A stretch of DNA of 64,000 nucleotides, taken from contig NW_026262581.1 in the NCBI RefSeq assembly GCF_021869535.1, positions 141,484,001 to 141,548,000 on the forward strand. The letters run 5' to 3'. This DNA comes from Mytilus californianus. Its lineage: Eukaryota. The notes beneath the pieces were generated by a model that was not told the origin of the DNA, did not search any database, and saw only the letters and a program-made list of their open reading frames with translations. Made by a program: the position numbers and the translations under genes. Positions 2 through 33,408 of the stretch are shown here, in pieces (positions within the stretch are counted from its first letter, which is position 1; each line of letters begins with the position of its first letter).

Positions 2-257
2 GGAATATTAGTCAAGTTATTAGATAGGAATGTATCAGGAATCAATGAGACGGAGATTTTAGAACTATATAGATCCTTGCAAATGTTTGACACCTATCTC
101 CATGAGGAAAGTATAGTTTTGACAGCTTTATATGTTCCGGTATTTCTTCTCGGATTTCTTGGAAATATAATAGTTACTCTTCTGGTACTAACAAACCAAC
201 AGCTGAGAAATTCTACCAATCTATATTTGTGTAATATGGCTGTAGCAGACTTGTTCG
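2..257 (+). CDS. Class A neuropeptide-type GPCR, first coding exon variant A (N-terminus, TM1, first half of TM2); 5'-partial
   Basis: Frame is open from base 2: GILVKLLDRNVSGINETEILELYRSLQMFDTYLHEESIVLTALYVPVFLLGFLGNIIVTLLVLTNQQLRNSTNLYLCNMAVADLF. It has the TM1 GN motif, TM2 N-M-A-V-A-D-L and two N-glycosylation sequons (NVS, NET). Phase-1 donor G|GTAAG at 257/258. The start codon lies upstream of the window. Confidence 0.85.
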
Positions 258-2413
258 GTAAGGTATCGAAATTTTTTAAACTCCCTATTTTTTGTACAGC
301 TTGCTTTATGTATATGGTATTTTTGAAAATCTATCTTACAATATCCTTAGCATTGTATCCATAACCATTTTTTGTAATTGATTGCGGGCATGGCCAGTTC
401 AACAAAGCAAACTTTGGAACCTACATGATTTATCTATTACAATTTGATGAAAATTTGTTGTTCATACATTGCAAAACTGCATTAAAATATCATTGTACTG
501 GATAATATCTAGGAATCTTTGTTGCAGATTTTATTCTTTTGTATATCTTTCACTATCATTGTTTTCTTTTTTTATAGTTTGACTCTGAATGAACCTATGT
601 TGATGTTTACAAAGTTTCTAACCGTCCTAAGTAAGCTAAGTTCTTTCATTTTTAAGATAAACTGTTAAAAGTCTTCCTAAAAATAAAGTTGCAATCAATA
701 CGACGAAATATTAAAGTTTAAACAAGTCTAAAACCTGTGCTATAAATATGAGTGTAGAACAGCTTAACATTTTATCTGAAAAAATCAAAGAAATGTCACA
801 TGATACATGACTATCAATATTGTTGCTAGGAATATAACTTTCTAAACTTTAAGTTTTATAAAAAAAAAACAATCGATGTTCATGTTTACCATAGTATACT
901 AGAAGGTTAAACACTCCAAATCAATAATTATCTGAACAATACATTGTATGTGGTTAACTGATTTGAAAATGTACACCGTCTTTTGTTTCCCCCCTTTTTT
1001 GTTGCTACCAAGAACTACTAATGGCATGGTAAAAAAAAGGCTGATATGATGAAGACATTTAATATTGTCAAAGATATCCCTTTATTCTTATTACGGAAAG
1101 AAACGTTTACGTTACCCTGAAGTAAATTTCTACGTCATCAACGATGAAATATGAATTTAACTAAAAAACCGTTTTAACTTTTTATTCAACTCGAAAATCT
1201 AGTTAATATCCAATAAATCAAACATATTAAATCCTGCCACATTCTTATTCTAAGCAAGAAATATGTAGTCTAGTTGTTGTCCTTGGTTGTTGTCTGCTCG
1301 TGTTATTATGATTTTATCATACACCAGACCGTTCGTTATCAATTTTGAACTGCTTCATCATATTTACATTTAATTATCCCAGGGCCTTTAATAGATTACT
1401 ATGCGGTATTGGTTTGGGTCATTTCTGAAGTCTAAAAACACTTGTCCGCCTGCTCGTTAGTGGATATTTGCCTTGTTTATATTATTTCATATCTCCGCTC
1501 TTTTATAATGATATAAAAAACATGGAGATTTCAGCATTTATAACACTACTCATATTAAGTTTCCATATTGATTGTTGTCAGTATGACCTGTTTCATAATG
1601 CAGTTGATTGTCCAATTTTTTTACCTTGAGATTGTACTATAAGTTAGTATTTCCATTGCATTTATCCCGCATATCCATGGGAATCTTAGATGAGGTATAC
1701 CATAAAGACAAGAATGTGTACTCCATTGTAAGATATTTTCTCACAATTGATGGACATCAAAAACTAAAATCTATAACAAATGCGATGATTTCTGCTTTTT
1801 TTCATTGTCAAATTCATGCCTTGGTAGTACCAAACCCTAAATGACAGCTTATGGCGTTTATGATCCCAGTTGATAACATTCGTTTGTAATCTTTCTCGTT
1901 ATTTCGATTACTTTCACACACAAAATATTCAAACTGGGTTCGGGAAAAAACGACCGAATGGTTGTTACGGTGTCCCGTTTTCATTGATAAAAAAGGTTAA
2001 CTCAGTCATAGATACATGTCCACTATTTTCAATTTGAAAATTTTACTGTTTTTTGTTCATGCACCTTGCTTTAACACGAACTATGGATTGACGACGGATG
2101 ATACATGCACAGGGGCAGAACTTTACACTGGGGATGCAACTTTGTTGTACATATTTGAATCCTATTATTTTACTCTTTTTTCCTGTTACTGAGACGTGCA
2201 TCTACCACTTTTATGTGTCACAGGTAGATAAAAGTTGTTGAATATAGTTATAGGTATCAGTTTTAAAAATTCCAAAATGCTTTTTTTTTTCTTTATACAG
2301 ATGAACTGGTTATTGGTGATAGTTATTTATTGTTGTTGCAACTCTTATACCGCCTTGCATTTGTTTGGTTTTTTTTGGGGTTTTTCTTATGTCTTGTATC
2401 TTTGTATCTATCA

Positions 2414-4560
2414 ATATGAAGTATAGTAAACGATACCTTGAGTTTTGATATCGGCGTCTAACCTATCATGACTGGAATCCAGATGATACATGAAGTATAT
2501 TAAACGATGACTGGAGTTTTGATATCGGCCTCTAACTTATCTTCATTGGAATCCACAAAAAACATGAAGTAAAGTAAACGATGGTTGAAGTTTTGATATC
2601 GGCCTCTAACCTATCATGATTGGAATCCAAATAATACATGAGGTCTAGTGAATAATGACTGGAGTTTTGATATCGGCCACTAACCTATCCTCATTTGAAT
2701 CGAGAAAATACATGAAGTCTAGTAAACGATGACTGGAGTTTTGATATCGGCCTCTAACCTATCATCATTGAAATCCAGATAATACATGAGGTATAGTGTA
2801 CGATGACTGGAGTTTTGATATCGGCCTCTAATCTATCATGATTGGAATCCAGATAATACATGAAGTATAGTAAATGATGACTGGAGTTTTGATATCGGCC
2901 TCTAACCTATCCTCATTTAAATCCCTATAATACATGAGGTAAAGTGAACGATGACTGGAGCTTTGATATCGGCCTCTAACCTATCCTTATTTGAATCCAG
3001 ATAATACAGGAAGTCTAGTAAACGATGACTGGAGTTTTGGTATTGGCCTCTAACCTATCATGGTTCGAATCTAGATAATACATGAAGTAAAGTAAACAAT
3101 GACTGGAGTTTTGATATCGGCCTCTAACTTATCCTTATTTAAATCCAGATAATACATGAAGTAAAGTAAAGGATGGCTGGAGTTTTGATATCGGCCTCTA
3201 ACCTATCACGATTGGAATCTAGATAATATATGAGGTATAATAAACGATGCATGGAGCTTTAATATCGGCCTCTAACCTGTCCTCGTTGGAATCCCTATAA
3301 TACATGAGGTATGGTGAACGATGACTGGAGTTTTGATATCGGCCTCTAATCTATCCTCATTAGAATCCAGATAATACATGAAGTAAAGCAAACGATGACT
3401 GGATTTTTGATATCGGCTTCTAACCTATCCTAATTTGAATCGAGATAATACATGAAGTCTAGTAAACGATGACTGGAGTTTTGATATCGGCCTCTAACCT
3501 ATCATGATTGGAATCCAGATAATACATGAGGTAAAGTGTACGATGACTGGAGTTTGGATATCGGCCTCTAACCTATCCTCATTTGAATCTAGATAATACA
3601 TGAAGTCTAGTAAACGACGACTGGAGTTTTGATATTGGCCTCTAACCTATCTTCATTGGAATCCAGATAATACATGAAGTATAGTAAACGATGACTGGAG
3701 TTTTGATATCGGCCTCTAACCTATCCTCATTAGAACACCTTTAATGCATGAGGTATAGTGAACGATGACTGGAGTTTTGATATCGGCCTCTAACCTATCC
3801 TTATTTAAATCCAGATAATACATGAAGTAAAGTAAACGATGGCTGGAGTTTTGATATCGGCCTCTAACCTATCACGATTGGAATCTAGATAATATATGAG
3901 GTATAATAAACGATGCATTGAGCTTCAATATCGGCCTCTATCCTGTCCTCGTTGGAATCCCTATATTACATGAGGTATGGTGAACGATGACTGGAGTTTT
4001 GATATCGGCCTCTAATCTATCCTTATTGGAATCCAGATAATACATGGAGTAAAGTAAACGATGGCTGGAGTTTTGATATCGGCCTCTAACCTATCCTCAT
4101 TGGAATCCAGATAATACATGAGGTATAGTAAACGATGCCTGGAGTTTTGATATCGGCCTCTAACATATCATCATTTGAATCCAGATAATACATGAAGTAT
4201 AGTAAAAAATTACTGGAGTTTTGATATCGGCTTCTAACCTATCCTCATTGGAATCCAGATAATACATGAAGTAAAGTAAACGATGCCTGGAGTTTTGATA
4301 TCGGCCTCTAACCTATCCTCATTGGAATCCAGATAATACATGAAGTAAAGTAAACGATGCCTGGAGTTTTGATATCGGCCTCTAACCTATTACGATTGGA
4401 ATTCAGATGATACATGAAGTATAGTAAACGATGACTGGAGTTTTGATATCGGCCTCTAACCTATCACGATTGGAATCCAGATGATACATGAAGTATAGTA
4501 AACGATGACTTTAGTTTTGATATCGGCTTCCAACCAATCCTCATAGGAATCAAGATAATA
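2414..4560. repeat. 74-bp tandem array, ~29 copies
   Basis: Unit catgaagtatagtaaacgatgactggagttttgatatcggcctctaacctatcctcattggaatccagataata; period 74 from gatatcggcc at 2521 and 2595. Confidence 0.95.
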
Positions 4561-6360
4561 AGCTTAGCGGCAAACACCTTCTTATTTTGTTTCTATAAAG
4601 ATAACAGGAAACCGAAACCTTCTCAATGATTTAAGTCTATTTTATTAAATCATCAGATTACTTTTGTTATATATTACTATGTTTATAGAAGAGCGCTTAT
4701 TTAAGGCACTCTTTCTATGAATTCTGGTATAATAAGCCTACGCAGGTCTATAGATATATCTGCTCATTCTAACGGGATGATGCATTGTTTATGCTTTTAA
4801 AACGTCTAACGTTTGATAATAGAATGCTATGAATAATTTATCTATATACATATATTAGACGAGCACACGTTGATGAGATATGTTGAATGTTGGTGTTTAA
4901 AGCCACCTACGGCACTTTTGTCTTTATCGTGAGGATCAGTTTGTTTATTTGTGGATAGTGTCTTACATTTTCAACATTGAATGTCGAAACACAAATTTCA
5001 ATTATTGAAAAATATATTCCACTAACCGAGTTTCTGTGTCACGACCTACATGTTGCTTTTCTATGTAAAATAGAAAACATAAGGTGCAATATGAAAACAT
5101 GTTTTATGATCTAAAAAAGCTATCAAAATTGAAAGACTTATTCAATATAGATAGATGATAAAGTATCTGCCAATAAGTTAGTAGATTTACTTTTATCCAG
5201 TTAGTAAGTCTAGACTTTTGTTAAATCCTTTATTTTTCAGCTGTTACAAAGTCCTTTCCATTATAGCATGAGACATTCAGGTTAATCACGTGATAACTAC
5301 ATGGTCAATAACCATATCAATAATATTACGTTCCCCCTTTTTTACAACATTCTATTTTTTACAATAATAGAGTTGCACTATTGTCTCATTGGCTACCTTC
5401 ATTATAACATTTCTTGTCCTGTATTGATCAGTGGTTACGGAAGCAATTGCTTTCGGTTGAATAACTATTGTCCGGTTAACTTTTTTTCAAATTCTTCCCA
5501 AGAAACCAACTCCAGTTTATTGTATAGGATTTGCTATTTACAAGATATTGACTTATTTAGTTGACAATTTGTTTATGATCTCTGTTGGGGGTCTTCATTT
5601 CTGTATTCTTTATTTATTTGACCTACATAAGTATTTTTCTTGATTTTGTATTATGTTGTTCATTATTCTTTACTGTTTATATCTTAGCAGACCAGCATCA
5701 TCTATCATTCTTTTTTGGGGCCCGCTGTCTATAATGTGTGATAGATTATTCTCTATTTTGTACGCCCAATCTAGACCTGCATATTTTCAAACATAGTTTT
5801 TTCTCCAGTTTATTTTTACTTATTAGATAAATTGGTATAAATTTTTTCATTCAATTTAATTTATAATGGTTGAAGACAAGTACGTATTTATAACTGTACA
5901 CGGTATTTTATTGATTCTCAAAACAAAATTTATTCCAAATATCCAAAATTAATATTTACATTCCAAAAACTCTCAATATCATCAACTTATTGTCAATACT
6001 GTTTTCCAGTTTGAGGCATGCAATCTTTGTAATACGATCTTTGTATATCTGAAATTGTACAATTTAACATAGTAAGCAATGGGACGATGAATAAGTGGGT
6101 TTTCTTCAAAACATTGATTACTCTGTTCACATCTTTGACCACTGGTCGTTATGGGTGAGTCTTATTGGCAATCAAACCACGTCTCCTTATTTTCTTACAC
6201 AAAACACTAAATGGTTGATGGGTTAAATACACACTTTCATTATAATACAAGCATTAGTAAACCAATTTACATCTGAAACGGTCATTTTGATCTAAACAGC
6301 TCTTAAAAGACTGAACGAATAATTGTTAAGTCATTTTCAACTTTAAAGACAATGTTCAGA

Positions 6361-6655
6361 CTTATTCACTGCGGTAAATTCAGTACTATTTAGACAGTTC
6401 GCTTGCAATCAGTTAAGATCTGTTTAGTCTATGTTCAGACTGTTCAGTAGTTATCAGTTACATGTACACATCAATCCTATACTGAACTGCCTGAAAAGCT
6501 AGTGAATAGTACTGAATTGACTGCAAGTGAATTCTCTGAACAGTACTGAATTGACTGCAAGTGAATTTGTGAACAGGTCTGAATTGACTGCAAGTGAATT
6601 GTCTGAACAGTACTGAATTAACTGCAAGTGAATTGTCTGAACAGTACTGAATTAC
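6361..6655. repeat. Imperfect foldback (~90-bp arms) whose right arm continues as a 34-bp tandem repeat (~4 copies)
   Basis: Reverse complement of 6361-6450 aligns with 6478 onward. Unit agtactgaattgactgcaagtgaattgtctgaac recurs at 6508 and 6542. Confidence 0.7.
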
Positions 6656-6771
6656 CATAATGGATTCATCTACAAACTGACTGGAAGACTGAACATGACT
6701 GAATAATTTATTTATTCAGAACTTTCAGATGGTGTTTAATTCCAACTGACCGTTAAACTTAAATTGTTAGT

Positions 6772-7843
6772 GAAGGTACCATTAGATAAACATATCGTGC
6801 TCCATATGTATCCCCTTGCTCCTAAACTCGGTGAAGGTGTCACTAGATATAAACATATCGTGCTCCATATGTATCTCCTTGCTCCTAAACTCGGTGAAGG
6901 TGTCATTAGATATAAACAAATCGTGATCCATATGTATCCCCTTGCTCCTAAACTCGGTGAAGGTATCATTAGATATAAACAAATCGTGCTCCATATGTAT
7001 CCCCTTGCTCCTAAACTCGGTGAAGTTATCATTAGATATAAACAAATCGTGCTCCATATGTATCCCCTTGCTCCTAAACTCGGTGAAGGTGTCATTAGAT
7101 ATAAACATATCGTGCTCCATATGTATCCCCTTGCTCCTAAACTCGGTGAAGGTATCATTAGATATAAACAAATCGTGCTCCATATGTATCCCCTTGCTCC
7201 TAAACTCGGTGACGGTATCATTAGATATAAACAAATCGTGCTCCATATGTATCCCCTTGCTCCTAAACTCGGTGAAGGTGTCATTAGATATAAACAAATC
7301 GTGCTCCATATGTATCCCCTTGCTCCTAAACTCGGTGAAGGTGTCATTAGATATAAACAAATCGTGCTCCATATGTATCCCCTTGCTCCTAAACTCGGTG
7401 AAGGTGTCATTAGATATAAACAAATCGTGCTCCTTATGTATCCCCTTGCTCCTAAACTCGGTGAAGGTGTCATTAGATATAAACAAATCGTGCTCCATAT
7501 GTATCCCCTTGCTCCTAAACTCGGTGAAGGTGTCATTAGATATAAACAAATCGTGCTCCATATGTATCCCCTTGCTCCTAAACTCGGTGAAGGTATCATT
7601 AGATATAAACAAATCGTGCTCCATATGTATCCCCTTGCTCCTAAACTCGGTGAAGGTGTCATTAGATATAAACAAATCGTGCTCCATATGTATCCTCTTG
7701 CTTCTTAACTCGGTGAAGGTGTCATTAGATATAAACAAATCGTGCTCCATATGTATCCTCTTGCTCCTAAACTCGGTGAAGGTGTCATTAGATATAAACA
7801 AATCGTGCTCCATATGTATCCCCTTGCTGCTAAACTCGGTGAA
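6772..7843. repeat. 63-bp tandem array, 17 highly homogeneous copies
   Basis: Unit ttagatataaacaaatcgtgctccatatgtatccccttgctcctaaactcggtgaaggtgtca; explains the four overlapping 21-aa-periodic ORFs. Confidence 0.97.
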
Positions 7844-8951
7844 TATTGGTAACAAGGGTGCTATCTAATTAAACAAATTAAATATATAAATCAACAAATT
7901 GGTATAAATCTAAAAGAGAAGACTCTGACGCAACTGCAACGCGGCAATAAAAACATTGAAATAAAACATTTTTCCTATACTTGTTGTCAGGAAACAGCTA
8001 CCAGCTAAAAAGTTAATAACTTCTCTCGCTTGCTAACATTTTATTAAAATTCGGTGCATCATCAATACCAATAAAGGAAAACTTGAATGATTTTAAAAGC
8101 TACTGACCATTTGACATTTTGAATTTCATTTAGTCTTTGATCAATGTTGACGTTTTAATGGATATATAAACGTTAACAGAGTTCTTCTCCTAAAACGTAC
8201 AATTTAACAGATTAACTTTTGTTTTAACATGCACTGTATTGTTGAAATAAAGAAGTCAGTACAGTTTCACGCATAGATAATCGTCATTGAAGAGATGAGG
8301 TATATGTGACGTAGGTTAGAAATGCATTGAAGTTCGTACATTATTCGTTTTGTGTTACATGAATCAAAGCATGACGTGCACTCTCTTCTTTAAAGACATC
8401 AAGCCTTTAACGATATTTAACAAGTGTTTGTAAAATATGTCAATATGTTAATGACATACGAATATATGTTTATTTCTGGGAGATTTTTTTTCAACATTTT
8501 TGTGTTGTTTTTGTGATGTTTGCTTGCTGCCTTATTGACGTTTAATTCATATCTCTTTTATTAAAATTGAATACAACTACATTTAACAAGTTAGAAAATG
8601 AACTTTCTCATAAAGTTTAATCCTGCTACATTCTTGTATTCATTCATTGGTTGTCATTGGTTGCTGTCTGCCATAATTGTTTTTCATTTAATGTTTTTAC
8701 ATGAATTAGTCCTCTGGTTTTTCGATTGAATTGTTGTATAGGGTTAGTGACGTTACATACGTTAACCCGGCCTAAATAACTTTGACCCGGACATATCACC
8801 GACATCATAATGAATGAACCGACATTCATTAGTTAGACCCGAACTTATTAAGTCATCTTCCGATTTGCTGTTGAAACAAAAATAAAATAACTTGTTTCTA
8901 TCATGCAACATATATAAATGCAATCCAATAAATCAATTCTCAAATTTTCAT

Positions 8952-9076
8952 CATATCTATTTGTAAAATATCAGTTGCTCAACACAATATGAAGCCTTTT
9001 GGACTAGTTCGTTGCGCTCATTCGACAAAAGGCTTCAAATTGTGACTCGCAGCTGATATTTTACAATATCAATATG
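8952..9076. repeat. Palindromic (hairpin) element with CpG-rich apex
   Basis: ttgtaaaatatcagttgc pairs with gcagctgatattttacaa; cacaatatgaagcctttt pairs with aaaaggcttcaaattgtg; loop gactagttcgttgcgctcattcgac. Confidence 0.8.
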
Positions 9077-9086
9077 CAGACAACCT

Positions 9087-9467
9087 GATAATCGGTACCT
9101 ATCATGAAGATAATCGGTAACTATCATGAAGATAATCGGTAATTATCATGAAGATAATCGGTAATTATCATGCAGATAATCGGTAACTATCATGAAGATA
9201 ATCTGTACCTATCATGAAGATAATCGGTAACTATCATGAAGATAATCGGTAACTATCATGAAGATAATCGGTACCTATCATGAAGATAATCGGTAACTAT
9301 CATGAAGATAATCGGTACCTATCATGAAGATAATCGGTACCTATCATGAAGATTATCGGTAACTATCATGAAGATAATCGGTACCTATCATGAAGATAAT
9401 CGGTACCTATCATGAAGATAATCGGTAATTATCATGAAGATAATCGGTACCTATCATGCAGATAATC
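9087..9467. repeat. 22-bp tandem array, ~17 copies
   Basis: Unit gataatcggt(ac/aa)ctatcatgaa; starts at 9109 and 9131 give period 22. Confidence 0.95.
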
Positions 9468-9739
9468 AAACAACGTCATCAATATCTTTGTATAGAGAAC
9501 ATGGCTTAATGTACAACTTATGTAATTCAAAACAAGAACTCGGGTTGAACTTTGAAATTTGGTATTGTACGCTAAGCATAACATTTTCCTCTATGAATAA
9601 ACGCTCTTGAACTGTAATGCACACCATCAATATACACCCTGAACACATGGACATGGTTTAGTGCAGCCAAACAGATTCCATGTGTGTCGTTTTTTAATTA
9701 AAGTTTAAATAAAGAACATGACCTTCATAGTAAAATGAC

Positions 9740-10260
9740 AAGAAGTTACCAATGGGGCAATGCAAATTACAACAGATCAGTAGATGAAAATACCAAGGTG
9801 TCAATTAGAATAAAGGGGGAATAGAAATATAAAGGTGGAAATAAAAACACCAATAGGCCAATAGAAAAAAAATACCCATAGATCAAATAAAATACCAAGA
9901 TAGCAATGCAAATATTATGTGGGCAATAAAAATACCAAGGTTAAAAAAATGCCAAGTATGCAATAAAAATACCCAGCGGGCAATATAATTGAGGAGGGGC
10001 AATAAAAAATACTATGGCGGAAATGAAATTTATAAAGAGCAATAAAAATACCAAATACCCAGAAGACAATAAAAATACAAATGGCAATTACAAATACCAA
10101 GGTTAAAATGAAAATACTAAGACAGTAATATTACTACCCAGAGACCAATGAAAATGCAAAGGGAGCATTAAAAATACCAAGAAGGAAATACCAAGGGAGC
10201 AATAAAAATAAAAAGAGTGAAACAAAAACTCTTATCTGAAGAAAGACAGACAATAATGGG
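9740..10260. repeat. Degenerate A-rich repeat built on gcaataaaaatacc
   Basis: Recurrent aataaaaatacc / aaataccaag words without a fixed period. Confidence 0.55.
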
Positions 10261-10622
10261 AACAAAAGTAAAAATCCGATATTAAGTTGCATTTTGTGAT
10301 AAGACATAAACGAGGTAAGGGGAAAATATCGCCGATAACTATAAATATATTTCACATAAGTGATGCAAAAATTCCTAGACAGAACAGGGAAGTTTGCTGA
10401 AAAAATGTAGTATGTAATACAATACGTTCACTAAAAGAAAAGATCAGATTCAAAGCTTTTATCTATAACCTAATAAACGTTCTGATAGATTCCCTTTGTG
10501 TACAAGATATGATGAATATGATTTCACTAAGCTAATAAAGTAACCTAATTTACATTTTCTTTTCAACATGAAATGAGATTATAGGTAGGTCAAAATGACG
10601 ACCCATTGTGAATTACAAAGTT

Positions 10623-14020: not shown

Positions 14021-14241
14021 TTCCGAATTCGAGTTGTCCTATTGCCGTCTATATAAATGATTTCCATATTTGTTTTGTGATTTTTGGCTGAGTCGTTCCA
14101 GAGTTTTTGGACTTTAATCGTAAATTTACTAAACAAAATTGTCAGCAATATTTCTTACGATCACCAATTCACATGTGCCGATGATTAAGGAATTTGTTAG
14201 ACAAAAAAACATTAGTTTAACTAATCGGCTATTGTATGATT

Positions 14242-20510: not shown

Positions 20511-22366
20511 TTGATATAATATTTATAGGTGAGGACTGTTTGTTTGATATATATATATAGGTGAGGACTGTTTGTTTGATATACTATTTATAGATGAGGA
20601 CTGTTTGTTTGATATACTATTTATAGGTGAGGACTGTTTGTTTGATATACCATTTATAGGTGAGGACTGTTTGTTTGATATAATATCTATAGGTAGGGAC
20701 TGTTTGTTTGATATAATATTTATAGGTGAGGACTGTTTGTTTGATATATTTAAAGGTGAGGACTGTTTGTTTGATATATTTAAAGGTGAGGACTGTTTGT
20801 TTGATATATTATTTATAGGTGAGGACTGTTTGTTTGATATATTTATAGGTGAGGACTGTTTGTTTGATATAGTATTTATAGGTGAGGACTGTTTGTTTGA
20901 TATAATATTTATAGGTGAGGACTGTTTGTTTGATATATTTATAGGTGAGGACTGTTTGTTTGATATACTATTTATAGATGAGGACTGTTTGTTTGATATA
21001 CTATTTATAGGTGAGGACTGTTTGTTTGATATACCATTTATAGGTGAGGACTGTTTGTTTGATATAATATCTATAGGTAGGGACTGTTTGTTTGATATAA
21101 TATTTATAGGTGAGGACTGTTTGTTTGATATAATATCTATAGGTGAGGGCTGTTTGTTTGATATATTTATAGGTGAGGACTGTTTGTTTGATATACTATT
21201 TATAGGTGAGGGCTGTTTGTTTGATATACTATTTATAGATGAGGACTGTTTGTTTGATATATTTATAGGTGAGGACTGTTTGTTTGATATAATATTTATA
21301 GGTGAGGACTGTTTGTTTGATATTATATTTATAGGTGAGGACTGTTTGTTTGATATAATATTTATAGGTGAGGACTGTTTGTTTGATATAGTATTTATAG
21401 GTGAGGACTGTTTGTTTGATATAATATTTATAGGTGAGGACTGTTTGTTTGATATATTTTTAGGTGAGGACTGTTTGTTTGATATAATATTTATAGGTGA
21501 GGACTGTTTGCTTGATATAATATTTATAGGTGAGGACTGTTTGTTTGATATAATATTTATAGGTGAGGTCTGTTTGTTTGATATATTTATAGGTGAGGAC
21601 TGTTTGTTTGATATACTATTTATAGGTGAGGACTGTTTGTTTGATATATTTTAGGTGAGGACTGTTTGTTTGATATACTATTTATAGGTGAGGACTGTTT
21701 GTTTGATATAATATTTATAGGTGAGGACTGTTTGTTTGATATACTATCTATAGGTGAGGACTGTTTGTTTGATATAATATTTATAGGTGAGGACTGTTTG
21801 TTTGATATAATATTTATAGGTGAGAACTGATTGTTTGATATACTATTTATAGGTGAGGACTGTTTGTTTGATATACTATTTATAGGTGGGGACTGTTTGT
21901 TTGATATACTATTTATAGGTGAGGACTGTTTGTTTGATATAATATTTATAGGTGAGGACTGTATGTTGGATATAATATTTATAGGCGAGGACTGTTTGTT
22001 GCATATAATATTTATAGGTGAGGACTGTTTGTTTGATATACTATTTATAGGTGGGGACTGTTTGTTTGATATAATATTTATAGGTGAGGACTGTTTGTTT
22101 GATATACTATTTATAGGTGAGGACTGTTTGTTTGATATACTATTTATAGGTGGGGACTGTTTGTTTGATATAATATTTATAGGTGAGGACTGTTTGTTTG
22201 ATATACTATTTATAGGTGAGGACTGTTTGTTTGATATGATATCTATAGGTGAGGACTGTTTGTTTGATATACTGTTTACAGGTGAGGACTGTTTGTTTGA
22301 TATAATATTTATAGGTGAGGACTGTTTGTTTGATATACTATTTATAGGTGAGGACTGTTTGTTTGA
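20511..22366. repeat. 33-bp (and 30-bp variant) tandem array, ~57 copies
   Basis: Unit ataggtgaggactgtttgtttgatataatattt; explains the IGEDCLFDIIF and NKQSSPINIIS ORFs. Confidence 0.97.
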
Positions 22367-22993: not shown

Positions 22994-23089
22994 TGAGCTT
23001 GATATGTGTTCCTATGGCTGTTGGTGATGCTTTATACAGAGTGTGGATTTATGGAGAGTTTATGTGTAAGGTAACAGCTTATTTACAAG
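22994..23089 (+). CDS. GPCR exon 2 (rest of TM2, ECL1, start of TM3)
   Basis: Acceptor tatatttcag|, 96 nt, phase 1 to phase 1: (V/L)SLICVPMAVGDALYRVWIYGEFMCKVTAYLQ(G), with the ECL1 W-x-x-G-x-x-x-C motif; donor G|GTAAG at 23089/23090. Too short for the ORF track. Confidence 0.93.
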
Positions 23090-23279
23090 GTAAGCATCCA
23101 CGATATCAAGTCTATCGGTATTGGTCGAGGTCATCAGTAACATACGACTGTTGGGGTGTGTATATATATTAACAATTGTTTCATCTACCCATTCAAATGT
23201 TAAGATTATGAGTTACTTACCACACGACGATGACACTTAGGTCATGTAATTAATTACTCCATCCAAATCTAATATCATA

Positions 23280-23780
23280 GTTAGGGGTAAATAATGACAA
23301 CAGACGAGAACAGTGAATCACTGAGAGAGTGTAGGTGGAAATAAGGGACTTATAAACTTCTGATCCATTGAAATATTCAGTTATTATTCTAGTTAGTCAG
23401 GGGCATTCAGGGTCAAATAATGACTACAGAGAAAGTCAGCCAATCGCTTTGAGGGTCAAATAACATTCTCACCTCTTGATATTATCAGATAATCGTTAAA
23501 GGTCAAGGTCATGCAGGATTAAATTTCAATTCCGATCAGGGTGTGAAGTAACAACTCCTTCCACTGTGATTATCAGTTAAACATCAAAGGTCAGGGGCAC
23601 TCAGGGTTGAATACAACTCCGACCACTGAGATAAGCTCTAAGGTCAGGGGCGATCAGGGTAAATTAACAACTCCGTCCTCATGGGATAACTATTACTTTT
23701 AACTCAGCTGGGTCAATTTACACCTAAGGAGATTATCAGTTAAATATGAAATGTCAGGGACAATTAGGGTAATTATTCGA
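23280..23780. repeat. Old, diverged ~60-bp tandem repeat
   Basis: Recurrent aaggtcaggggc...tcagggt...aacaactcc...actgagat motifs. Confidence 0.5.
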
Positions 23781-23793
23781 CTTGGTTACTAAG

Positions 23794-26700
23794 GTTGGTC
23801 GGCTACTCTTTGTAGTTCTATAGGGTTGTAATGACGTTGGTCAGCCTCTCTTTGTAGTTCTAAAGGGTTGTAATAACGTTGGTCGGCTTCTCTTTATAGT
23901 TCTATAGGGTTGTAATAACGTTGGTCGGCTTCTCTTTGTAGTTCTATAGGTTTGTAAAAACGTTGGTCGGCTTCTCTTTGTAGTTCTATAGGGTTGTAAT
24001 AACGTTGGTCAGCTTCTCTATGTAGTTTTATAGGGTTGTAAAAACGTTCGACGGCTTCTCTTTGTAGTTCTATAGGGTTGTAATAACGTTGGTCGGCTTC
24101 TCTTTGTATTTCTATAGGGTTGTAATAACGTTGGTCGGCTTCTGTTTGTAGTTCTATAGGGTTGTAATAACGTTGGTCGGCTTCTCTTTGAAGTTCTATA
24201 GGGTTGTAATAACGTTGGTCGGCTTTTGTTTGTAGTTCTAAAGGGTTGTAATAACGTTGGTCGGCTTCTCTTTGAAGTTTTATAGGGTTGTAATACCGTT
24301 GGTCGGCTTCTCTTTGAAGTTCTATAGAGTTGTAATAACGTTAGTCGGCTTCTCTTCGTTGTTCTATAGGGTTGTAATAACGTTGGTCGGTGTCTCTTTG
24401 TAGTTCTATAGGGTTGTAATAACGTTGGTCAGCTTCTCCTTGTAGTTCTATAGGGTTGATATAACGTTGGTCGGCTTCTCTTTGAAGTTCTATAGGGTTG
24501 TAATAACGTTGGTCGGTTTCTCTTTGTAGTTCTATAGGGTTGTAATAACGTTGGTCGGCTTCTCTTTGTAGTTCTAAAGGGTTGTTATGACGTTGGTCAG
24601 CTTCTCTTTGTAGTTCTATAGGGTTGTAATAACGTAGGTCGGCTTCTGTCTGTAGTTCTATAGGTTTGTAATAACGTTGGTCAGTTTCTCTTTGTAGTTA
24701 TATAGGGTTGTAATAACGTTGGTCAGCTTCTGTTTGTAGTTCTATAGAGTTGTAATAACGTTGGTCAGCTTCCCTTTGTAGTTCTATCGGGTTGTAATAA
24801 CGTTGGTCGGCTTCTCTTTGTAGTTCTAAAGGGTTGTAATAACGTTGGTCAGCTTTTCTTTGTAGTTGTATAGAGTTGTAATAACGTTGGTCAGCTTCTC
24901 TTTGTAGTTCTATAGGGTTGTAATAACGTTGGTCGGCTTCTCCTTGTAGTTTATATAGGGTTGTAATAACGTTGGTCAGCTTCTGTCTGTAGTTCTATAG
25001 GGTTGTAATAACGTTGGTCGGCTTCTGTTTGTAGTTCTATAGAGTTGTAATAACGTTGGTCGGTTTCTCTTTGTAGTTCTATAGGGTTGAAATAATGTTG
25101 GTCGGTTTCTCTTTGTAGTTCTATAGGGTTGTAATAACGTTGGTCGGCTTCTCTTTGTAGTTCTATAGAGTTGTAATAACGTTGGTCGGTTTCTCTTTGT
25201 AGTTCTATAGGGTTGTAATAACGTTAGTCGGCTTCTCTTTGTAGTTCTATATAGTTGTAATAACCTGGTCGTCTTCTCTTTGTAGTTTTATAGGGTTGTA
25301 ATAACGTTGATCAGCTTCTGTTTGAAGTTCTATAGGGTTGTAATGACGTTGGTCGGTTTCTCTTTGTAGTTCTATATGGTTATAATAACGTTGGTCAGCT
25401 TCTGTTTGTAGTTCTATAGGGTTGTAATAACGTTGGTCGGCTTCTCTTTGTAGTTTTATAGGGTTGTAAAAACGTTGGTCGGCTTGTCTATGTAGTTCTA
25501 TAGGGTTGTAATAACGTTGGTCAGCTTCTCTTTGTAGTTCTATAGGGATGTAATAACGTTGGTCGGCTTCTGTTTGTAGTTCTATAGGGTTGTAATAACG
25601 TTGGTCGGTTTCTCTTTGTAGTTCTATAGGGTTGTAATAACGTTGGTCAGCTTCTCTTTGTAGTTTTATGGGGTTGAAAAAACGCTGGTCGGCTTGTCTT
25701 TGTAGTTCTAACGGTTTGATATACCGTTGGTCGCCTTCTCTTTGTAGTTCTATAGGGTTGTAATAACAGTTAAGGGTCGTCTTCTTTTGTATTTCTATAG
25801 GGTTGTAATAACGTTGGTCGGCTTCTCTTTGTAGTTCTTTAGGGTTGTAATACCGTTGGTGGGCTTCTCTTTGTAGTTCTATAGGGTTGTAATACCGTTG
25901 GTCGGCTTCTCTTTGAAGTTCTATAGGGTTGTTATAACGTTGGTCAGCTTCTTTTTGTAGTTCTATAGGGTTGTAATAACGTTGATCGGCTTCTCTTTGA
26001 AGTTCTATAGGGTTGTAATACCGTTGGTCACCTTCTCTTTGTAGTTCTATAGGGTTGAAATACCGTTGGTCAGCTTCTCTTTGTAGTTCTTTAGGGTTGG
26101 AATACCGTTGGTCAGCTTCACTTTGTAGTTCAATAGGGTTGTAATAACGTTGGTCAGCTTCTCTTTGTAGTCTTATCGGGTTGTAAAAACGTTGGTCGGC
26201 TTGTCTTTGTAGTTCTATAGGTTTGTAATTACGTTGGTCGGCTTCTCTTTGTAGTTCTATAGGGTTGTAATAACAGTTAAGGGTCGGCTTCTTTTTGTAT
26301 TTCTATAGGGTTGTAATAACGTTGGTCGGCTTTTCTTTGTAGTTCTATAGGGTTGTAATAACGTTGGTTGGCTTCTCTTTGTAGTTCTATAGGGTTGTAA
26401 TAACGTTTGTCGGCTTCTCTTTGTAGTTCTATAGGGTTGTAATAACGTTGGTCGGCTTCTCTTTGTACTTCTATAGGGTTGTAATAACGTTGGTCAGCTT
26501 CTCTTTATAGTTCTATAGGGTTGTAATAACGTTTGTCGGCTTCTCTTTGTAGTTCAATAGGTTTGTAATAACGTTGGTCGGCTTCTCTTTGTAGTTCTAT
26601 AGGGTTGTTATAACAATTAAGGGTCGTCTTCTCTTTGTTTTTCTATAGGGTTGTAATAATGTTGGTCGACTTCTGTTTGTAGTTCTGTAGGGTTGTTATA

Positions 26701-29617
26701 ACGTTGGTCGGCTACTCTTTGTAGTTCTATAGGGTTGTAATACCGTTGGTCGGCTTCTCTTTGAAGTTCTATAGGGTTGTAATAACGTTGGTCGACTTCT
26801 GTTTGTAGTTCTGTAGGGTTGTTATAACGTTGGTCGGCTACTCTTTGTAGTTCTATAGGGTTGTGATAACGTTGGTCAGCTTCTCTTTGTAGTTTTATAG
26901 GGTTGTAATAACGTTGGTCAGCTTCTCTTTGTAGTTCTATAGGGTTGTGATAACGTTGGTCAGCTTCTCTTTGTAGTTTTATAGGGTTGTAATAACGTTG
27001 GTCAGCTTCTCTTTGTAGTTTTATAGGGTTGTAATAACGTTAGTCGGCTTCTCTTTGTAGTTCTATAGAGTAGTTATAACGTTGGTCAGCTTCTCTTTGT
27101 AGTTCTATAGGGTTGTTATAACGTTGGTCGGCTTCTCTTTGTAGTTCTATAAGGTTGTAATAAAGTTGGTCGGCTTCTCTTTGTAGTTCTATAGAGTTGT
27201 AATAACGTTAGTCGGCTTCTCTTCGTTGTTCTATAGGGTTGTAATAACAGTTAAGGGTCGTCTTCTTTTGTATTTCTATAGGGTTGTAATAACGTTGGTC
27301 GGCTTCTCTTTGTAGTTCTTTAGGGTTGTAATACCGTTGGTGGGCTTCTCTTTGTAGTTCTATAGGGTTGTAATACCGTTGGTCGGCTTCTCTTTGAAGT
27401 TCTATAGGGTTGTTATAACGTTGGTCAGCTTCTTTTTGTAGTTCTATAGGGTTGTAATAACGTTGATCGGCTTCTCTTTGAAGTTCTATAGGGTTGTAAT
27501 ACCGTTGGTCACCTTCTCTTTGTAGTTCTATAGGGTTGAAATACCGTTGGTCAGCTTCTCTTTGTAGTTCTTTAGGGTTGGAATACCGTTGGTCAGCTTC
27601 ACTTTGTAGTTCAATAGGGTTGTAATAACGTTGGTCAGCTTCTCTTTGTAGTCTTATCGGGTTGTAAAAACGTTGGTCGGCTTGTCTTTGTAGTTCTATA
27701 GGTTTGTAATTACGTTGGTCGGCTTCTCTTTGTAGTTCTATAGGGTTGTAATAACAGTTAAGGGTCGGCTTCTTTTTGTATTTCTATAGGGTTGTAATAA
27801 CGTTGGTCGGCTTTTCTTTGTAGTTCTATAGGGTTGTAATAACGTTGGTTGGCTTCTCTTTGTAGTTCTATAGGGTTGTAATAACGTTTGTCGGCTTCTC
27901 TTTGTAGTTCTATAGGGTTGTAATAACGTTGGTCGGCTTCTCTTTGTACTTCTATAGGGTTGTAATAACGTTGGTCAGCTTCTCTTTATAGTTCTATAGG
28001 GTTGTAATAACGTTTGTCGGCTTCTCTTTGTAGTTCAATAGGTTTGTAATAACGTTGGTCGGCTTCTCTTTGTAGTTCTATAGGGTTGTTATAACAATTA
28101 AGGGTCGTCTTCTCTTTGTTTTTCTATAGGGTTGTAATAATGTTGGTCGACTTCTGTTTGTAGTTCTGTAGGGTTGTTATAACGTTGGTCGGCTACTCTT
28201 TGTAGTTCTATAGGGTTGTAATACCGTTGGTCGGCTTCTCTTTGAAGTTCTATAGGGTTGTAATAACGTTGGTCGACTTCTGTTTGTAGTTCTGTAGGGT
28301 TGTTATAACGTTGGTCGGCTACTCTTTGTAGTTCTATAGGGTTGTGATAACGTTGGTCAGCTTCTCTTTGTAGTTTTATAGGGTTGTAATAACGTTGGTC
28401 AGCTTCTCTTTGTAGTTCTATAGGGTTGTGATAACGTTGGTCAGCTTCTCTTTGTAGTTTTATAGGGTTGTAATAACGTTGGTCAGCTTCTCTTTGTAGT
28501 TTTATAGGGTTGTAATAACGTTAGTCGGCTTCTCTTTGTAGTTCTATAGAGTAGTTATAACGTTGGTCAGCTTCTCTTTGTAGTTCTATAGGGTTGTTAT
28601 AACGTTGGTCGGCTTCTCTTTGTAGTTCTATAAGGTTGTAATAACGTTGGTCGGCTTCTCTTTGTAGTTCTATAGAGTTGTAATAACGTTAGTCGGCTTC
28701 TCTTCGTTGTTCTATAGGGTTGTAATAACGATGGTCGGCTTCTCTTTGAAGTTTTATAAGGTTGTCATAACGTTGGTCGGCTTCTCTTTGAAGTTCTATA
28801 GGGTTGTAATAACGTTGGTCGACTTCTCTTTGTAGTTCTGTAGTGTTGTTATAACGTTGGTCAGCTTCTGTTTGTAGTTCTATAGGGTTGTAAAAACGTT
28901 GGTCGACTTCTGTTTGTAGTTCTGTAGGGTTGTTATAACGTTGGTCAGCTTCTCTTTGTAGTTCTATAGGGTTGGAATACCGTTGTTCAGCTTCTCTTTG
29001 TAGTTCAATAGGGTTGTAATAACGTTGGTCAGCTTCTCTTTGTAGTTCTATAGGGTTGTAATAACGTTGCTCGGCTTCTCTTTGTAGTTCTATAGGGTTG
29101 TAATAACGTTGGTCAGCTTCTCTTTGTAGTTCTATAGGGTTGTAATAACGTTGCTCGGCTTCCCTTTGTAGTTCTATAGGGTTGTAATAACGTTGGTCGG
29201 CTTCTCTTTGTAGTTCTATAGGGTTGTAATAACGTTGGTCGGCTTCTCTTTGTTGTTCTATAGGGTTGTAATAACGTTGGTCAGCTCCTGTTTGTAGTTC
29301 TATAGTGTTGTAATAACGTTGGTCAGCTTATCTTTGTAGTTCTATAGGGCTAATAACGTTGGTTGGCTTCTCTTTGTAGTTCTATAGGGTTAATAACGTT
29401 GGTCGGCTTCTCTTTGTAGTTCTATAGGGTTGTAATAACGTAGGTCGGCTTCTCTTTGTAGTTCTATAGGGTTAATAACGTTGGTCAGCTTCTCTTTGTA
29501 GTTCTATAGGGTTGTAATAACAATTTAGGGTCGGCTTCTGTTTGTAGTTCTATAGGGTTGAAATAACGTTGGTCGGCTTCTCTTTGAAGTTCTATAGAGT
29601 TGTGATAACGTTGGTCG
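23794..29617. repeat. 42-bp satellite array, ~139 copies, in GPCR intron 2
   Basis: Unit ttctctttgtagttctatagggttgtaataacgttggtcggc; gggttg at 23823 and 23865 gives period 42. Confidence 0.98.
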
Positions 29618-30068
29618 TACACACGTTTTTAGTATCACACAAATTGCTTTTGTCAACACTATTTCATTCGAATAAATCTACAAAAAGAAGCATACAATTC
29701 CTAAATCAAAGTTAGCGTTGTTCTATAATTTCAAAATATGTTGTCATCCTATTACAATTAATAGGATCTTGTAGTGTATGATAATACGTGTAATAAACTT
29801 CAGATGACCTCTATGTTGGCATCAGATAATATTAAAGAGTATTAAGCTGGTTAATTATCGATATCATCTATCTTCGTACAATGCCTTATTTATTACCAAA
29901 CACGTAAAACGATCCTATTTATTTGAGCACTGTCTATTTAGAACAGAGAAAAACTCGTGTTCTATAATTAAATAAAAGTTAAAAAGAGAATTATATGTGT
30001 GTTAGTGTTTATAATTGTATTCTGTGTATCTATCATTTATTAATTTCAATGTTGTATGTTAAGTTTTA

Positions 30069-30269
30069 GGCGCTGGCTACGATTACGTTGAAATGTAACA
30101 ATAATAAAAAAAAAGTTATTGTTATATTGGACACTAATTGCCGGAATGCTAGGTTGGGTAAGGAACCAATTGATTACGAACGTAACAATAATATTTGCGT
30201 CTACTGTTACGTTTCGTTATTGTTGCGTTAGATTTATTAAACTACTATAGTTTTGTGCTTAATTCTTCG

Positions 30270-30324
<55 letters not shown>

Positions 30325-31527
30325 CAAATAATGTTTAAATAGTTAATATAGTTTTTAAGTAATTTCTTAATATATCCAAAAGTAAAAGATTGAGGTTATA
30401 TTTAATTTTAAAACCTTTTTTTTTTGCATTGCTTTGATTTAGTGTAATCTTTTAGTAATTTGAAGTTATATTTAAAATATTCTCATAATAACATTAACGG
30501 TTTCAATTTTACTGCACCAGCAGACTTCAACTTATGCTGATTTTTTTGTTTGTTTCAAAGTTCAAGTTTTTATTAGTCAGTTTCAATCACAAATCCGTTC
30601 AAGCTCATAAATGTGCTTCGGGGCAGTTGTAACTCATTTATAGAAACTCTTTGTTTTGAACTGTAAATATTCATAAATAATAGGATAATACCATTTAAAT
30701 TAAAACACATCAAATCTCTTTGTTTTGAACTGTGAATATGCATAAACAATCGGATCCTACAATTTCATTGGTCGAAAGCACTTTGCTATATTCTAAGTAT
30801 TGAACTGAAAACCTACCCTTATTACTGTCGTTATAATTTGAACAATGGATGAAGTGATTTCTATTACCAAATTTGTTTTGGGTGACAAATTAAAAACTTT
30901 AGATGCGTTTGAATCAAAACTAAAACAATATCAAGAATCAAATTGTATGTAGTTATACAAATGCAGTTTTCGAAAAAATTGACACATCAAAGGCAAAGTT
31001 TTAAAGCAGTGAACTAAAATACTGCGATCTTCTGTAGTATCTGTATGCTTGTATCCATGGAGGACGTAATTTCGTTTCAAAAACAGATGGAGTACGTTCA
31101 GATTGATTGGAACTTTTTTGTCTGCAAAACCGACGTGCACATTGCTGAATCACTCGTTTGTGATGGGTACCTAGAGTGGTTTCACCAAATATGCGTCGGA
31201 CTAAAACATGCTCCCAAAGGCACATACTGGATATGTAGAAGCTGCTATCAGTGTAAATAAGATGAAACAAAAATGTATGCAATATTGTAGCAGTGCAGTG
31301 TTTACGAATAAAAAGTGTTAAAGTTGTATTTTGATACATATTACTAGTTCCATCATACATTGAAGCGCATTAACGTAACAACAACACAACGTAACCGTAT
31401 ACACAAATATTATTGTTACGTTCGTAAATAATCGGTTCCTAACCCAACCTTGCATTCCGGTAATTAGTGTCCAATGTAACAATTTTTTTTATTATTGTTA
31501 CATTTCAACGTAATCGTAGCCAGTGCC
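30069..31527 (+). mobile_element. Non-autonomous Mutator (MULE) deletion derivative, 1459 bp
   Basis: ~165-bp TIRs starting GGC(G/A)CTGGCTACGATTACGTTGAAATG; 9-bp TSD taagtttta / ttagtttta (8/9). Interrupted coding remnants FVLGDKLKTLDAFESKLKQYQ...ELKYCDLL*YLYACIHGGRNFVSK (N-terminal region I recognise from animal MULE/ZSWIM3-type proteins) run into a decayed PHD finger. Internal (AAT)n at ~30272-30318. Confidence 0.85.
31100..31260 (+). pseudogene. Degenerate PHD finger within the MULE element
   Basis: FFVCKTD...LVCDGYLEWFHQICVGLKHAPKGTYWICRSC fits the C4HC3 spacing with two Cys positions replaced (ttt for tgt, tac for tgc). Confidence 0.75.
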
Positions 31528-32212
31528 TTAGTTTTATTGGTGAGCGTCATGCCAACCAAACATGTTTATTCATGTTTAAAAAGTAAAATAACAAAAATAC
31601 CGAAATCAAGGAAAATTCAAAACGGAAAGTCCCTTATCAAATGGCAAAATCAATAGCTCAAACACATCAATATAAACTATTTTCATGACGTCATGAGTAT
31701 ATGAATTACTACACAGGAAAAAGTTTCTGTAATCATAATTTTAATCTTGATATACTATTTTAGTATTTCTTATTTGAAATAACAAGGAAACGAATTTTTT
31801 TAATGGAGATGTGTAAGTTCGGCCTTTCAAGTACTCAACAACTTAGCCTTCGGAGAAGAGGCGGGATCACCTACTATGTGTTCGAAGCTGTGGTCTTATT
31901 TCAGAGAGAACTATATACCAGTAGAACAACGGACAAAGATATAAACAAATACATATCATTGTACGGCTTTCAACAATGAGAAAGTTATAATAAGCACATC
32001 ATGACAACATGTAAAACGTAACAACAGCGAAAACTAACGGTCCAATTTAAGCTAATATTTAACGAAAATTAAAAATTACAGACGACAAATGGGCTTATGC
32101 TGTTACTGAAGGCTTGTTCTAAGTCAATGTTCAACTACTAAATAAACCTTGGTTCTCACAGTTTTCATAAGTTGAACATACAAAAATTAATGTTTTTTTC
32201 TTTTTGTTTCAG

Positions 32213-33408
32213 GAGTAACCGTTGCTGCCAGTATTTTTACGATATCAACATTAAGTGTAGATAGATTCTTAGCTATCCGTCATCCAATGATATTCCGTCG
32301 AGTGAGTAACACAAGAGCCGCTACCAGAATTATTATAGTCATTTGGATAGTTTCAATTGTGATCATGGCGCCACTTCTTATTGTTAAGAAAGTGAACACT
32401 TTACATCTATTTGAAGAACCAATACATTTCTGTCATGAGATATGGCCACATATCACACATCGACAAGCTTATGATATCTGTTTATTTTTGTTTGTATACA
32501 TTATACCAGGTATTGTAATTTTTATTGCATATAGTCTTATAGGTAATAAATTGTGGACCGAGGACAAAAATCTACAGAGGACCGAGTCGGAGACAAGTAA
32601 AGGTATTGGGAAACATGTAATGTCCGGGCGGAAGCGAGTAGCTAAGATGTTGATAGCTTTAGCAGTATTATTTGCCGTATGTTGGTTGCCTTATTATATT
32701 GTAAGTTTGTACTTAGATTTCACAACAGAAGGTGCCAAGAACTTTTTGCTCGTTTTGCCGTTCACTATATTGTTGGGGCATTCTAACAGTGCTTTCAATC
32801 CTATATTATATTTCTATTCCAGTAAAAATTTCAGAAAGTACCTGTACAGAGCTTTGAAATGTAAGTCAAAGAGAACTAAACGTTCGCTTGCCGTTCGATA
32901 TACACCTGCTCAGAACAATAAACACCAAGATGCAAATGTCAAACCTCGCATACGAATTTCAAGTACCGGAAGTTTTAAGTCTTCGGGTACTGGAAGTTTT
33001 AGATTTTCCAGGTCATCAAATACAAGTCTCAAATCTTCAAACTTGTCAAGTCGATCACGTGACAGTAGAAGTGACAAAAAACGTGAATCGGATAAAGATA
33101 CATTAATGATCGAAAGAAAAAGTTATACTCTGCCTCTTGTTATCATGCATGGAAATGGCGGGAAACGATTACTTAAAGCTCATAAAAAAGAAATTCTTGA
33201 TACATCATTAAGTATTCCCTCCACAATCAATGAAGAAAGCAGCCGACTAGGATCAATTAGTCCTGTCAATGCTGTAACTACTTTTAAAGCAGATGTAATG
33301 CCAGAGATAGAGGAAGCACCTGAAGACATACAGTTGTATCTCAGTGTGTCTAAAACAGAACTGTCACTCAAATTCATCGACAGCGAAGAAGAAATAGACG
33401 ACGTATGA
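32213..33408 (+). CDS. GPCR exon 3 (TM3-TM7 and long C-tail); orexin/SIFamide/QRFP-like neuropeptide receptor group
   Basis: Acceptor tttttctttttgtttcag|ga; (G)VTVAASIFTISTLSVDRFLAIRHPM (DRY-type DRF), ECL2 CHEIW, TM6 CWLP, TM7 NPILY, stop TGA at 33406-33408; AATAAA at 33514. The subfamily call is from motif resemblance only. Confidence 0.95.

Follow-up and report, generated by a model that had tools for sequence, protein, structure and literature searches.

A mussel peptide-receptor gene with two paralogous first coding exons, probably giving two receptors

The DNA considered here is a 64-kb stretch of the genome of the mussel Mytilus californianus, called the window below, and it carries on its plus strand one gene for a rhodopsin-type (class A) peptide G protein-coupled receptor (GPCR). 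At its 5' end this gene has two related first coding exons, named A and B, and downstream of them there is one set of further exons; judging from the letters of the DNA, the gene probably makes two versions of the receptor. Position 13014 of the window corresponds to position 141497014 on JAKFGE010000001.1 (GCA_021869535.1), and the two records are identical over the first 300 and over a further 400 bases compared.

The receptor gene and its shared exons

The coding parts of the gene, together with a conserved block before the second of them, are as follows:

2-257, plus strand: first coding exon, copy A; N-terminal ectodomain, first transmembrane helix (TM1), first intracellular loop (ICL1), and the second transmembrane helix (TM2) to two residues past D2.50
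12930-13133, plus strand: conserved block 5' of exon B, found in a five-species alignment; candidate 5' untranslated region, core promoter or weak acceptor
13134-13386, plus strand: first coding exon, copy B; ATG, 84 codons and one base, encoding the same segments as A
22994-23089, plus strand: shared exon 2; 96 nt, phase 1 at both ends; rest of TM2, first extracellular loop (ECL1), and the start of TM3 with the conserved Cys
32213-33408, plus strand: shared exon 3; TM3 (DRF) to TM7 (NPILY), helix 8, a long Ser-rich C-terminal tail and the stop codon

The family of the receptor can be read from several of these parts. Exon 3 matches the Pfam family 7tm_1 (PF00001) with E = 5e-38 over profile positions 68-260, and exons A and B each match positions 1-31/32 of the same profile with E ~1e-6. 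The signature residues of class A are GN (N1.50) and D2.50 in both first exons, with the motif AVADL in A and AVSDL in B, and DRF at TM3 and NPILY at TM7 in exon 3. Helix positions are given here in the Ballesteros-Weinstein numbering, anchored on N1.50 and D2.50 in the translations. As for the name of the receptor, the RefSeq products vary by species (QRFP-like, NPFF2-like, galanin-2a-like). When the full-length M. edulis orthologue is compared with solved structures, NPFFR2, OX2R, QRFPR and GALR1 all appear with E = 4.5e-44 to 1e-42; because all four score near E = 1e-43 to 1e-44, these vertebrate-type names are not discriminating.

The shared exons are well preserved. Exon 2 lies between an acceptor reading tttcag and a donor reading G/gtaag (the slash marks the end of the exon); it is 97-100% identical across five Mytilus species and 94% identical to exon 2 of the scallop Pecten maximus. 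It is joined to exon 3, whose acceptor reads gtttcag, through a split codon (G+GA = Gly). The translation of exon 3 is 100% identical to RefSeq XP_052106756.1 of M. californianus, and its ratio of nonsynonymous to synonymous substitution rates (omega, or dN/dS) is 0.04, with a likelihood-ratio test (LRT) statistic of 236.9. This value and the other omega values for single exons given below come, unless another method is named, from a maximum likelihood (ML) codon model (GY94-F3x4) on a tree of five Mytilus species, with the LRT taken against omega = 1. Logan/ENA contigs that hold exon 3 (P0125, P0127) were tried as cDNA and rejected, since they are genomic and include intron sequence.

The RefSeq model just named ("galanin receptor 2a-like"), which spans 23014-33408 of the window, and its M. 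trossulus counterpart XP_063420873.1 are both 423 amino acids long. Both start at a Met inside exon 2 and are therefore truncated at the 5' side, as they have no N-terminus, no TM1 and only half of TM2. The models of two congeners are complete: XP_071169342 (M. edulis) and XP_076087707 (M. galloprovincialis) are each 518 residues long and consist of an A-type exon, a Val, exon 2 and exon 3. The exon A of the window is 86-87% identical to the exon used in these two models. It is cut by the edge of the window, and the same two orthologues place its ATG 9 nt before window position 2. Its donor (G/GTAAG, phase 1) gives the Val codon upon joining to exon 2 (G+TG), and it carries two N-glycosylation sequons, NVS and NETEI. 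Exon A joined to the shared exon 2 is in use, according to the RefSeq models of these two species.

What is available downstream of B? The original prediction, made from the letters of the window before any database search, held that there is no second exon 2 or exon 3 in the 64 kb, and this is borne out: a low-stringency tblastn search (E = 10) of both strands of the window gives no further copy of either exon, and the window is free of N, so that it has no assembly gap. The only downstream exons available to B are the shared exons 2 and 3.

One might still suppose that A and B belong to two separate tandem genes, and that the downstream exons of the A gene were lost by mis-assembly or lie elsewhere. 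The interval between 257 and 13134 is indeed rich in satellites, which are prone to assembly collapse. Against this, no remnant of another exon 2 or exon 3 is present in a window without N. Two independent assemblies at chromosome level, those of M. edulis and M. galloprovincialis, both show A, B, exon 2 and exon 3 in this order; the loci available for M. coruscus and M. trossulus, which stop short of exon A, keep the order B, exon 2, exon 3; and the RefSeq models of two species have A spliced to the shared exon 2. The idea of two genes is thus close to refuted, and we give it next to no credence.

Paralogy of the first exons and selection on exon B

Exons A and B are paralogues with frame-compatible splice sites on a single downstream set of exons, and purifying selection acts on both copies. 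Within the window, tblastn pairs the two with E = 1e-20 and 60% identity. The original prediction had counted 34 identical residues out of 47 over TM1-TM2, and a recount gives exactly the same number; a global alignment gives 42 of 79. Fifteen of these 42 identical residues are written with different codons, where about 12 had been predicted. Also as predicted, both translations show the pattern N-x-S...N-x-T-E-I (in B the sequons are NMS and NATEI) and a span of 17 residues from MF to LY, and both exons end at the matching point, two residues past D2.50, with a phase-1 GTAAG donor. Joined to exon 2, B of the window gives a Leu codon (T+TG) in frame, in place of the Val of A.

The duplication that gave rise to the two exons is not recent. 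Only ~125 nt of TM1-TM2 can be aligned between A and B at the DNA level, with 71-76% identity. The synonymous distance (dS) between them is saturated (1.0-2.6), and omega in the transmembrane part is 0.1-0.2, as obtained from the dN/dS comparison that had been proposed along with the original prediction; A and B were therefore both constrained for most of the time since the duplication. The branch lengths since that event are nearly equal, 0.68 for A and 0.64 for B. In M. edulis and M. galloprovincialis, the 10 kb before exon A contain no further first exon, and the suggestion that more variable exons may lie upstream gains no support over that distance.

How do the two exons differ? Apart from ~38 residues of the tail, 13 of the 47 residues of TM1, ICL1 and the first half of TM2 (TM2a) are different. 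At the extracellular end of TM1 the differences fall at 1.34, 1.36 and 1.37, and in the middle of this helix at 1.48. A further group is found at the cytoplasmic end of TM1, in ICL1 and at the start of TM2 (1.54, 1.58-1.60, one residue of ICL1, 2.39 and 2.41), and two more stand late in the exon, at 2.49 and 2.52. The main pocket positions of TM2 in class-A receptors, which we take to be those from 2.53 onward, are encoded here by the shared exon 2.

Exon B starts with an ATG at 13134, which is preceded by an in-frame TGA. It is intact in M. californianus, M. coruscus, M. edulis, M. galloprovincialis and M. trossulus, with the ATG, 84 codons, no stop or indel and a phase-1 GTAAG, and in the last four species it sits at the matching place in intron 1. 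The donor is T/GTAAGT in M. californianus and G/GTAAG in the other four species, in which B joined to exon 2 would read ...SDLCVSLICVPMAVG, close to the ...ADLCVSLICVPMAVG encoded with the single first exon of Pecten. When M. californianus is compared with M. edulis, exon B has 88.9% identity and no gap, whereas the 550 nt before it have 77.9% identity and 7 gap openings (Fisher p = 1.3e-4); for other pairs of species p goes down to 4e-6. The introns of the locus, where blastn detects them, are generally 68-81% identical between species. The conservation does not end sharply at the ATG: upstream of B, the same pair of species has ~80% identity and 0-1 gap from -1 to -200, and ~70% identity and 45 gap columns from -201 to -400. 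An AG at 13095-13096, inside this conserved block, is kept in all five species.

The codon model places the constraint more precisely. Omega is 0.157 for exon A (p = 7e-7) and 0.35 for the whole of exon B (p = 0.0055). Within B, the part encoding TM1, ICL1 and TM2 (codons 37-84) has an omega of 0.125 (p = 8.7e-5), and its variable sites are distributed as 8, 0 and 7 over the first, second and third codon positions; the N-terminal tail (codons 1-36) has an omega of 1.03, which is not significant and is near neutral. The earlier claim of purifying selection on both exons stands for A and for the transmembrane part of B, and it does not extend to the tail of B. A relaxation of exon B, as the pairwise NG86 omega of 0.5-0.8 for the whole exon between the two Mytilus clades might suggest, was considered and rejected, because the partitioned ML model shows strong constraint, in the transmembrane part only.

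Those same pairwise values, the neutral tail and the absence of B from the annotations and protein databases searched are what one would cite for B being a decaying relic of an old partial duplication, that is, a pseudo-exon in intron 1 of a gene that makes only the A receptor. We find this improbable. The reading frame, the ATG and the donor are intact in five species without an indel, while the adjoining intron has accumulated its 7 gap openings over 550 nt, with mismatches at twice the rate; omega = 1 is rejected by the LRT both for the whole exon and for its transmembrane part; and the branch leading to B since the duplication is no longer than that of A. It is the conservation, the codon-level selection, the saturated dS between A and B and the nearly equal branches, taken together, that lead us to conclude that the frame of B has been read as protein.

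Hints on the age of the duplication may come from outside the genus. A mytilid-like contig (L009) has one exon 1, located 8.9 kb upstream of exon 2, and no other copy of exon 1 in the 10 kb upstream; this exon is followed by a decayed repeat of its own end and donor, as is the case at Mytilus B, and the locus suggests that an exon in the position of B exists outside Mytilus. A short open reading frame (ORF), P0147, groups with A with a support of 99. These data hint, as a lead only, that the duplication of A and B may predate the genus Mytilus. A metagenome scan for relatives of exon 1, aimed at dating the duplication, gave 147 pattern matches, of which 0 were confirmed.

Possible products of exon B and comparable genes

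What would be made from this arrangement? The reading that we favour, and consider likely, is that of a single class-A peptide-receptor gene in which two old paralogous first coding exons stand before shared exons, giving two full seven-transmembrane (7TM) receptors. In the A transcript, B would be removed as part of intron 1 and A would be spliced to exon 2; in the B transcript, the first donor of B would be spliced to the same exon 2. Transcripts of B could start just upstream of B; alternatively, a shared non-coding leader could be spliced to B in place of A. In M. edulis and M. galloprovincialis a candidate acceptor, consisting of a pyrimidine tract and tag/tgATG, is located before A, so that A may be internal, and A and B could instead be selected by mutually exclusive splicing. 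The two products would share everything from the second half of TM2 (TM2b) to TM7 and the C-terminal tail, and would differ in the N-terminal tail, TM1, ICL1 and TM2a. Since the largest difference between the isoforms is the ~38-residue glycosylated tail, the two forms would likely differ in the control of their expression, in ligand capture via the N-terminus, or in trafficking or coupling via ICL1.

All of the sequence-level statements of the original prediction hold, and the observation on which it was built is therefore confirmed. The interpretation built on it stands in part. Its core, one gene with two paralogous alternative first coding exons before a shared set, has good comparative backing: RefSeq splices A to exon 2, B is constrained, and clams have comparable isoforms, as described below; on the other hand, no model or protein joins B to exon 2. 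Because no transcript, protein model or database protein makes this connection, isoform B is inferred.

Several further points weigh against a complete B receptor. First, a minisatellite has arisen from the end of exon B:

13348-14022, plus strand: minisatellite with a 48-bp unit in 14 copies (TRF), each unit corresponding to the last 25 nt of exon B and the first 23 nt of the intron

As a result of this amplification, exact TTTGTKGTAAGT matches number 12, against 0.09 expected, and 3' of the authentic T/GTAAGT donor of B there are 13 further copies of the repeat, each carrying a decoy donor (G/GTAAGT), 11 of these being exact and better-matching. The use of a decoy would add an in-frame TGA, and reading through from exon B meets a TGA after 8 codons. 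Second, the tail of B evolves almost neutrally, and the codon tests on B draw on 84 codons from 5 closely related species only. Third, B is in none of the four RefSeq annotations of Mytilus. There is no B-type protein among 5.8 billion clustered proteins, searched with the region of the A-type N-terminus and with the B peptide, and a search of 1.84 billion representatives with B gives no product of B and exon 2, its matches being A-type read-through ORFs, other GPCRs and concatenated first-exon models.

These points feed an explanation in which B is conserved and expressed, but gives a protein of ~92 residues comprising the N-terminal tail and TM1, or a transcript targeted to nonsense-mediated decay (NMD), or acts as an intronic cis-regulatory element of the A isoform. 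The decoys, with their better G at position -1 after a weaker authentic donor, and the early stop on read-through fit it well. So do the missing annotation of a B isoform, the conservation of the 200 nt upstream, and the low dS of B (0.12-0.17, vs 0.33-0.50 in A and exon 3), which hints at some constraint at the nucleotide level. This explanation stays alive because of the weak donor, the decoys, the near-neutral tail and the lack of transcript support for B. We nevertheless judge it unlikely, although less so than the relic: selection on the transmembrane part is codon-specific, with none of the 15 variable sites at a second position; the donor phase and its GTAAG are kept in five species; N1.50 and D2.50 (in a LAxxD-type motif), which are important only in a full 7TM fold, are retained; and the equivalent exons of clams are modelled as parts of full receptors. 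The reading of two complete receptors from one gene remains the one that we prefer.

The clams offer the closest parallel. A related gene of Mercenaria mercenaria has RefSeq isoforms X1-X3 (XP_045158872/3/4, "QRFP-like peptide receptor"), and one of Ruditapes philippinarum has isoforms X1/X2 (XP_060596397/8). In alignment, the isoforms of each gene differ only from the N-terminus to the ADL of TM2; from exon 2 onward they have the same sequence. These receptors are of the same family as that of the mussel, being 43% identical to exon 3 of the window; their alternative first exons are annotated, whereas Mytilus B is in no annotation, and their genes span >200 kb. The position of the first intron is shared by Mytilus, Pecten, Ruditapes and Haliotis, and a phase-1 intron after ADLx is also seen in read-through ORFs of a Ruditapes cluster (P0135) and a Haliotis cluster (P0139). 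Pecten maximus has the same layout of three exons, but only one exon 1 is present there, over the gene itself and the 10 kb before it.

Did mussels and clams inherit their alternative first exons from a common ancestor? A tree built from the exon-1 peptides places A and B of Mytilus together (ultrafast bootstrap support, UFboot, 80-82), beside the pectinids, and unites the clam exons in one clade with a support of 100. Because the clam first exons form a clade of their own, the two duplications are independent, and an ancient duplication shared with clams, which had been considered, was rejected. A further case may be found in Mya arenaria, where XP_052775850.1 ("uncharacterized protein") strings together three tandem first-exon units, each with a tail, TM1 and half of TM2, the middle one being degenerate. 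In the tree these units group weakly with one Haliotis receptor (UFboot 58), well outside the clade of mussels, scallops and venerid clams, and they seem to be part of a paralogous receptor gene in which first exons have multiplied.

It is possible, though we would rather doubt it at present, that first-exon duplication recurs across bivalves and that selection repeatedly favours the swapping of the tail, TM1 and ICL1 of one neuropeptide receptor. If so, isoforms with different ligand preference or coupling would be expected, as in the AKHR1 variants of the oyster, and the fast-evolving tail of B would reflect a change of function and not decay.

Comparable arrangements are known from other receptors. 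According to Li et al. (2016; PMC5024129), AKHR1 of Crassostrea gigas (formerly GnRH-R; see also Rodet et al. 2008) has four 7TM splice variants, A-D, of which A and B respond to AKH while C and D do not. This is likewise a class-A peptide GPCR gene of a bivalve in which alternative exons give several complete 7TM receptors; it differs in being of the AKH/GnRH type, in having eight exons and in having its variants proven by cDNA cloning, whereas mussel B is known from genomic sequence. In insects, the Gr/Or loci (Gr28b, Gr39a, Gr23a; Robertson et al. 2003) have alternative long N-terminal exons spliced to shared C-terminal exons, and these alternative exons have been gained and lost in a lineage-specific manner (PMC3011837). 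Here too, tandem paralogous 5' exons on shared 3' exons allow one locus to give several 7TM proteins. However, these proteins are not rhodopsin-family GPCRs, and their variable exon makes up most of the protein and the shared part its C-terminus, while in the mussel only the tail, TM1 and half of TM2 are variable. ETHR-A and ETHR-B of insects come from one class-A peptide GPCR gene by way of alternative exons, are conserved among insects and have different roles (PMC8291126). Like the two putative mussel forms, they are receptors that differ in part of the 7TM bundle, but the alternative exons of ETHR are at the 3' side and are not first exons. In protocadherin and UGT1A clusters, many variable first exons are spliced to constant exons, and every one of them has a start codon of its own and a proven promoter. 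The mussel gene likewise has separate start codons on constant exons; it differs in having two such exons and only a candidate promoter for B, and there is no evidence at this gene of stochastic promoter choice. Little was found in the literature on class-A GPCRs with alternative first exons encoding TM1.

The original prediction called the swapping of part of the 7TM bundle unusual, which was overstated, given the annotated clam orthologues and the precedents of oyster AKHR1 and the insect Gr/Or genes. The layout with alternative first exons is not a new kind of architecture, as it is already annotated in clams. What is new is the unannotated and selectively maintained exon B of Mytilus, the correction of the two truncated RefSeq models of M. 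californianus and M. trossulus, and the evidence for more than one duplication of the first exon in this receptor group. If the favoured reading is true, a single orphan neuropeptide-type gene would yield two receptors, with differences in TM1, in ICL1 and in the N-terminal region that captures the ligand. The independent duplication of the same exon in clams would then provide a natural experiment on the role of TM1 and the N-terminus in the function and expression of peptide GPCRs. The practical value lies in the deorphanisation of the receptor and in better gene models for bivalves.

Repeats and neighbouring features

The amplification at the end of exon B is not confined to M. californianus. 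Behind exon B of M. edulis, M. galloprovincialis and M. trossulus there are likewise amplified copies of the exon's end, and in M. coruscus at least the first repeat is present. Arrays of this kind were located elsewhere as follows:

L001, 24250-25240: array derived from the end of exon B
L002, 4335-5140: array derived from the end of exon B
L003, 22107-23373: array derived from the end of exon B
L009, 10250-10400: array derived from the end of exon B, decayed

The array is old, since its decayed version is also present in the mytilid-like contig L009.

Exon 2 has undergone something similar in other species. Upstream of exon 2, copies of its 5' part form a tandem array with a spacing of ~57 bp in M. 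edulis, in M. trossulus and, at least in part, in M. galloprovincialis; in M. edulis its 3' part is also amplified, downstream of the exon, with a spacing of ~48 bp. The arrays derived from exon 2 are these:

L001, 30840-33620 and 33985-36093: arrays derived from exon 2
L002, 5700-9880: array derived from exon 2
L003, near 32800-33043: array derived from exon 2

None was found by tblastn in the M. californianus window. The M. edulis model CAG2232048 is translated through repeated KIYGEFMCKVTAYLQG units and is an annotation artefact.

The introns of the gene consist mostly of unrelated minisatellite arrays, with periods of 22-74 bp:

2416-12581: intron minisatellite array
14242-15258: intron minisatellite array
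17474-18335: intron minisatellite array
20511-22366: intron minisatellite array
23790-29617: intron minisatellite array

One array with a 42-bp period has 138 copies and takes up 5.8 kb of intron 2, an intron that is ~9.1 kb long in M. californianus, compared with ~1.5 kb in M. trossulus. The same intron contains, at 31018-31257 on the plus strand, an open frame of 80 codons that matches the PHD finger (PF00628, E = 1.3e-5) and could be a piece of a mobile element or else a stray exon.

Further downstream, the original prediction had placed the start of another gene at 52 kb, and one does begin there:

52176-52424, plus strand: first exon of the neighbouring gene, 92% identical to the first exon of an M. 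edulis gene with the Pfam domains ABC_membrane_2 and ABC_tran

This ABC transporter gene is also found downstream of the M. edulis orthologue of the receptor gene. Just upstream of it in the window, at 50729-51735 on the plus strand, there are ORFs for fragments of a reverse transcriptase (Pfam RVT_1, E = 1.8e-11 on 50729-51031), which are probably the remnant of a non-LTR (long terminal repeat) retrotransposon.

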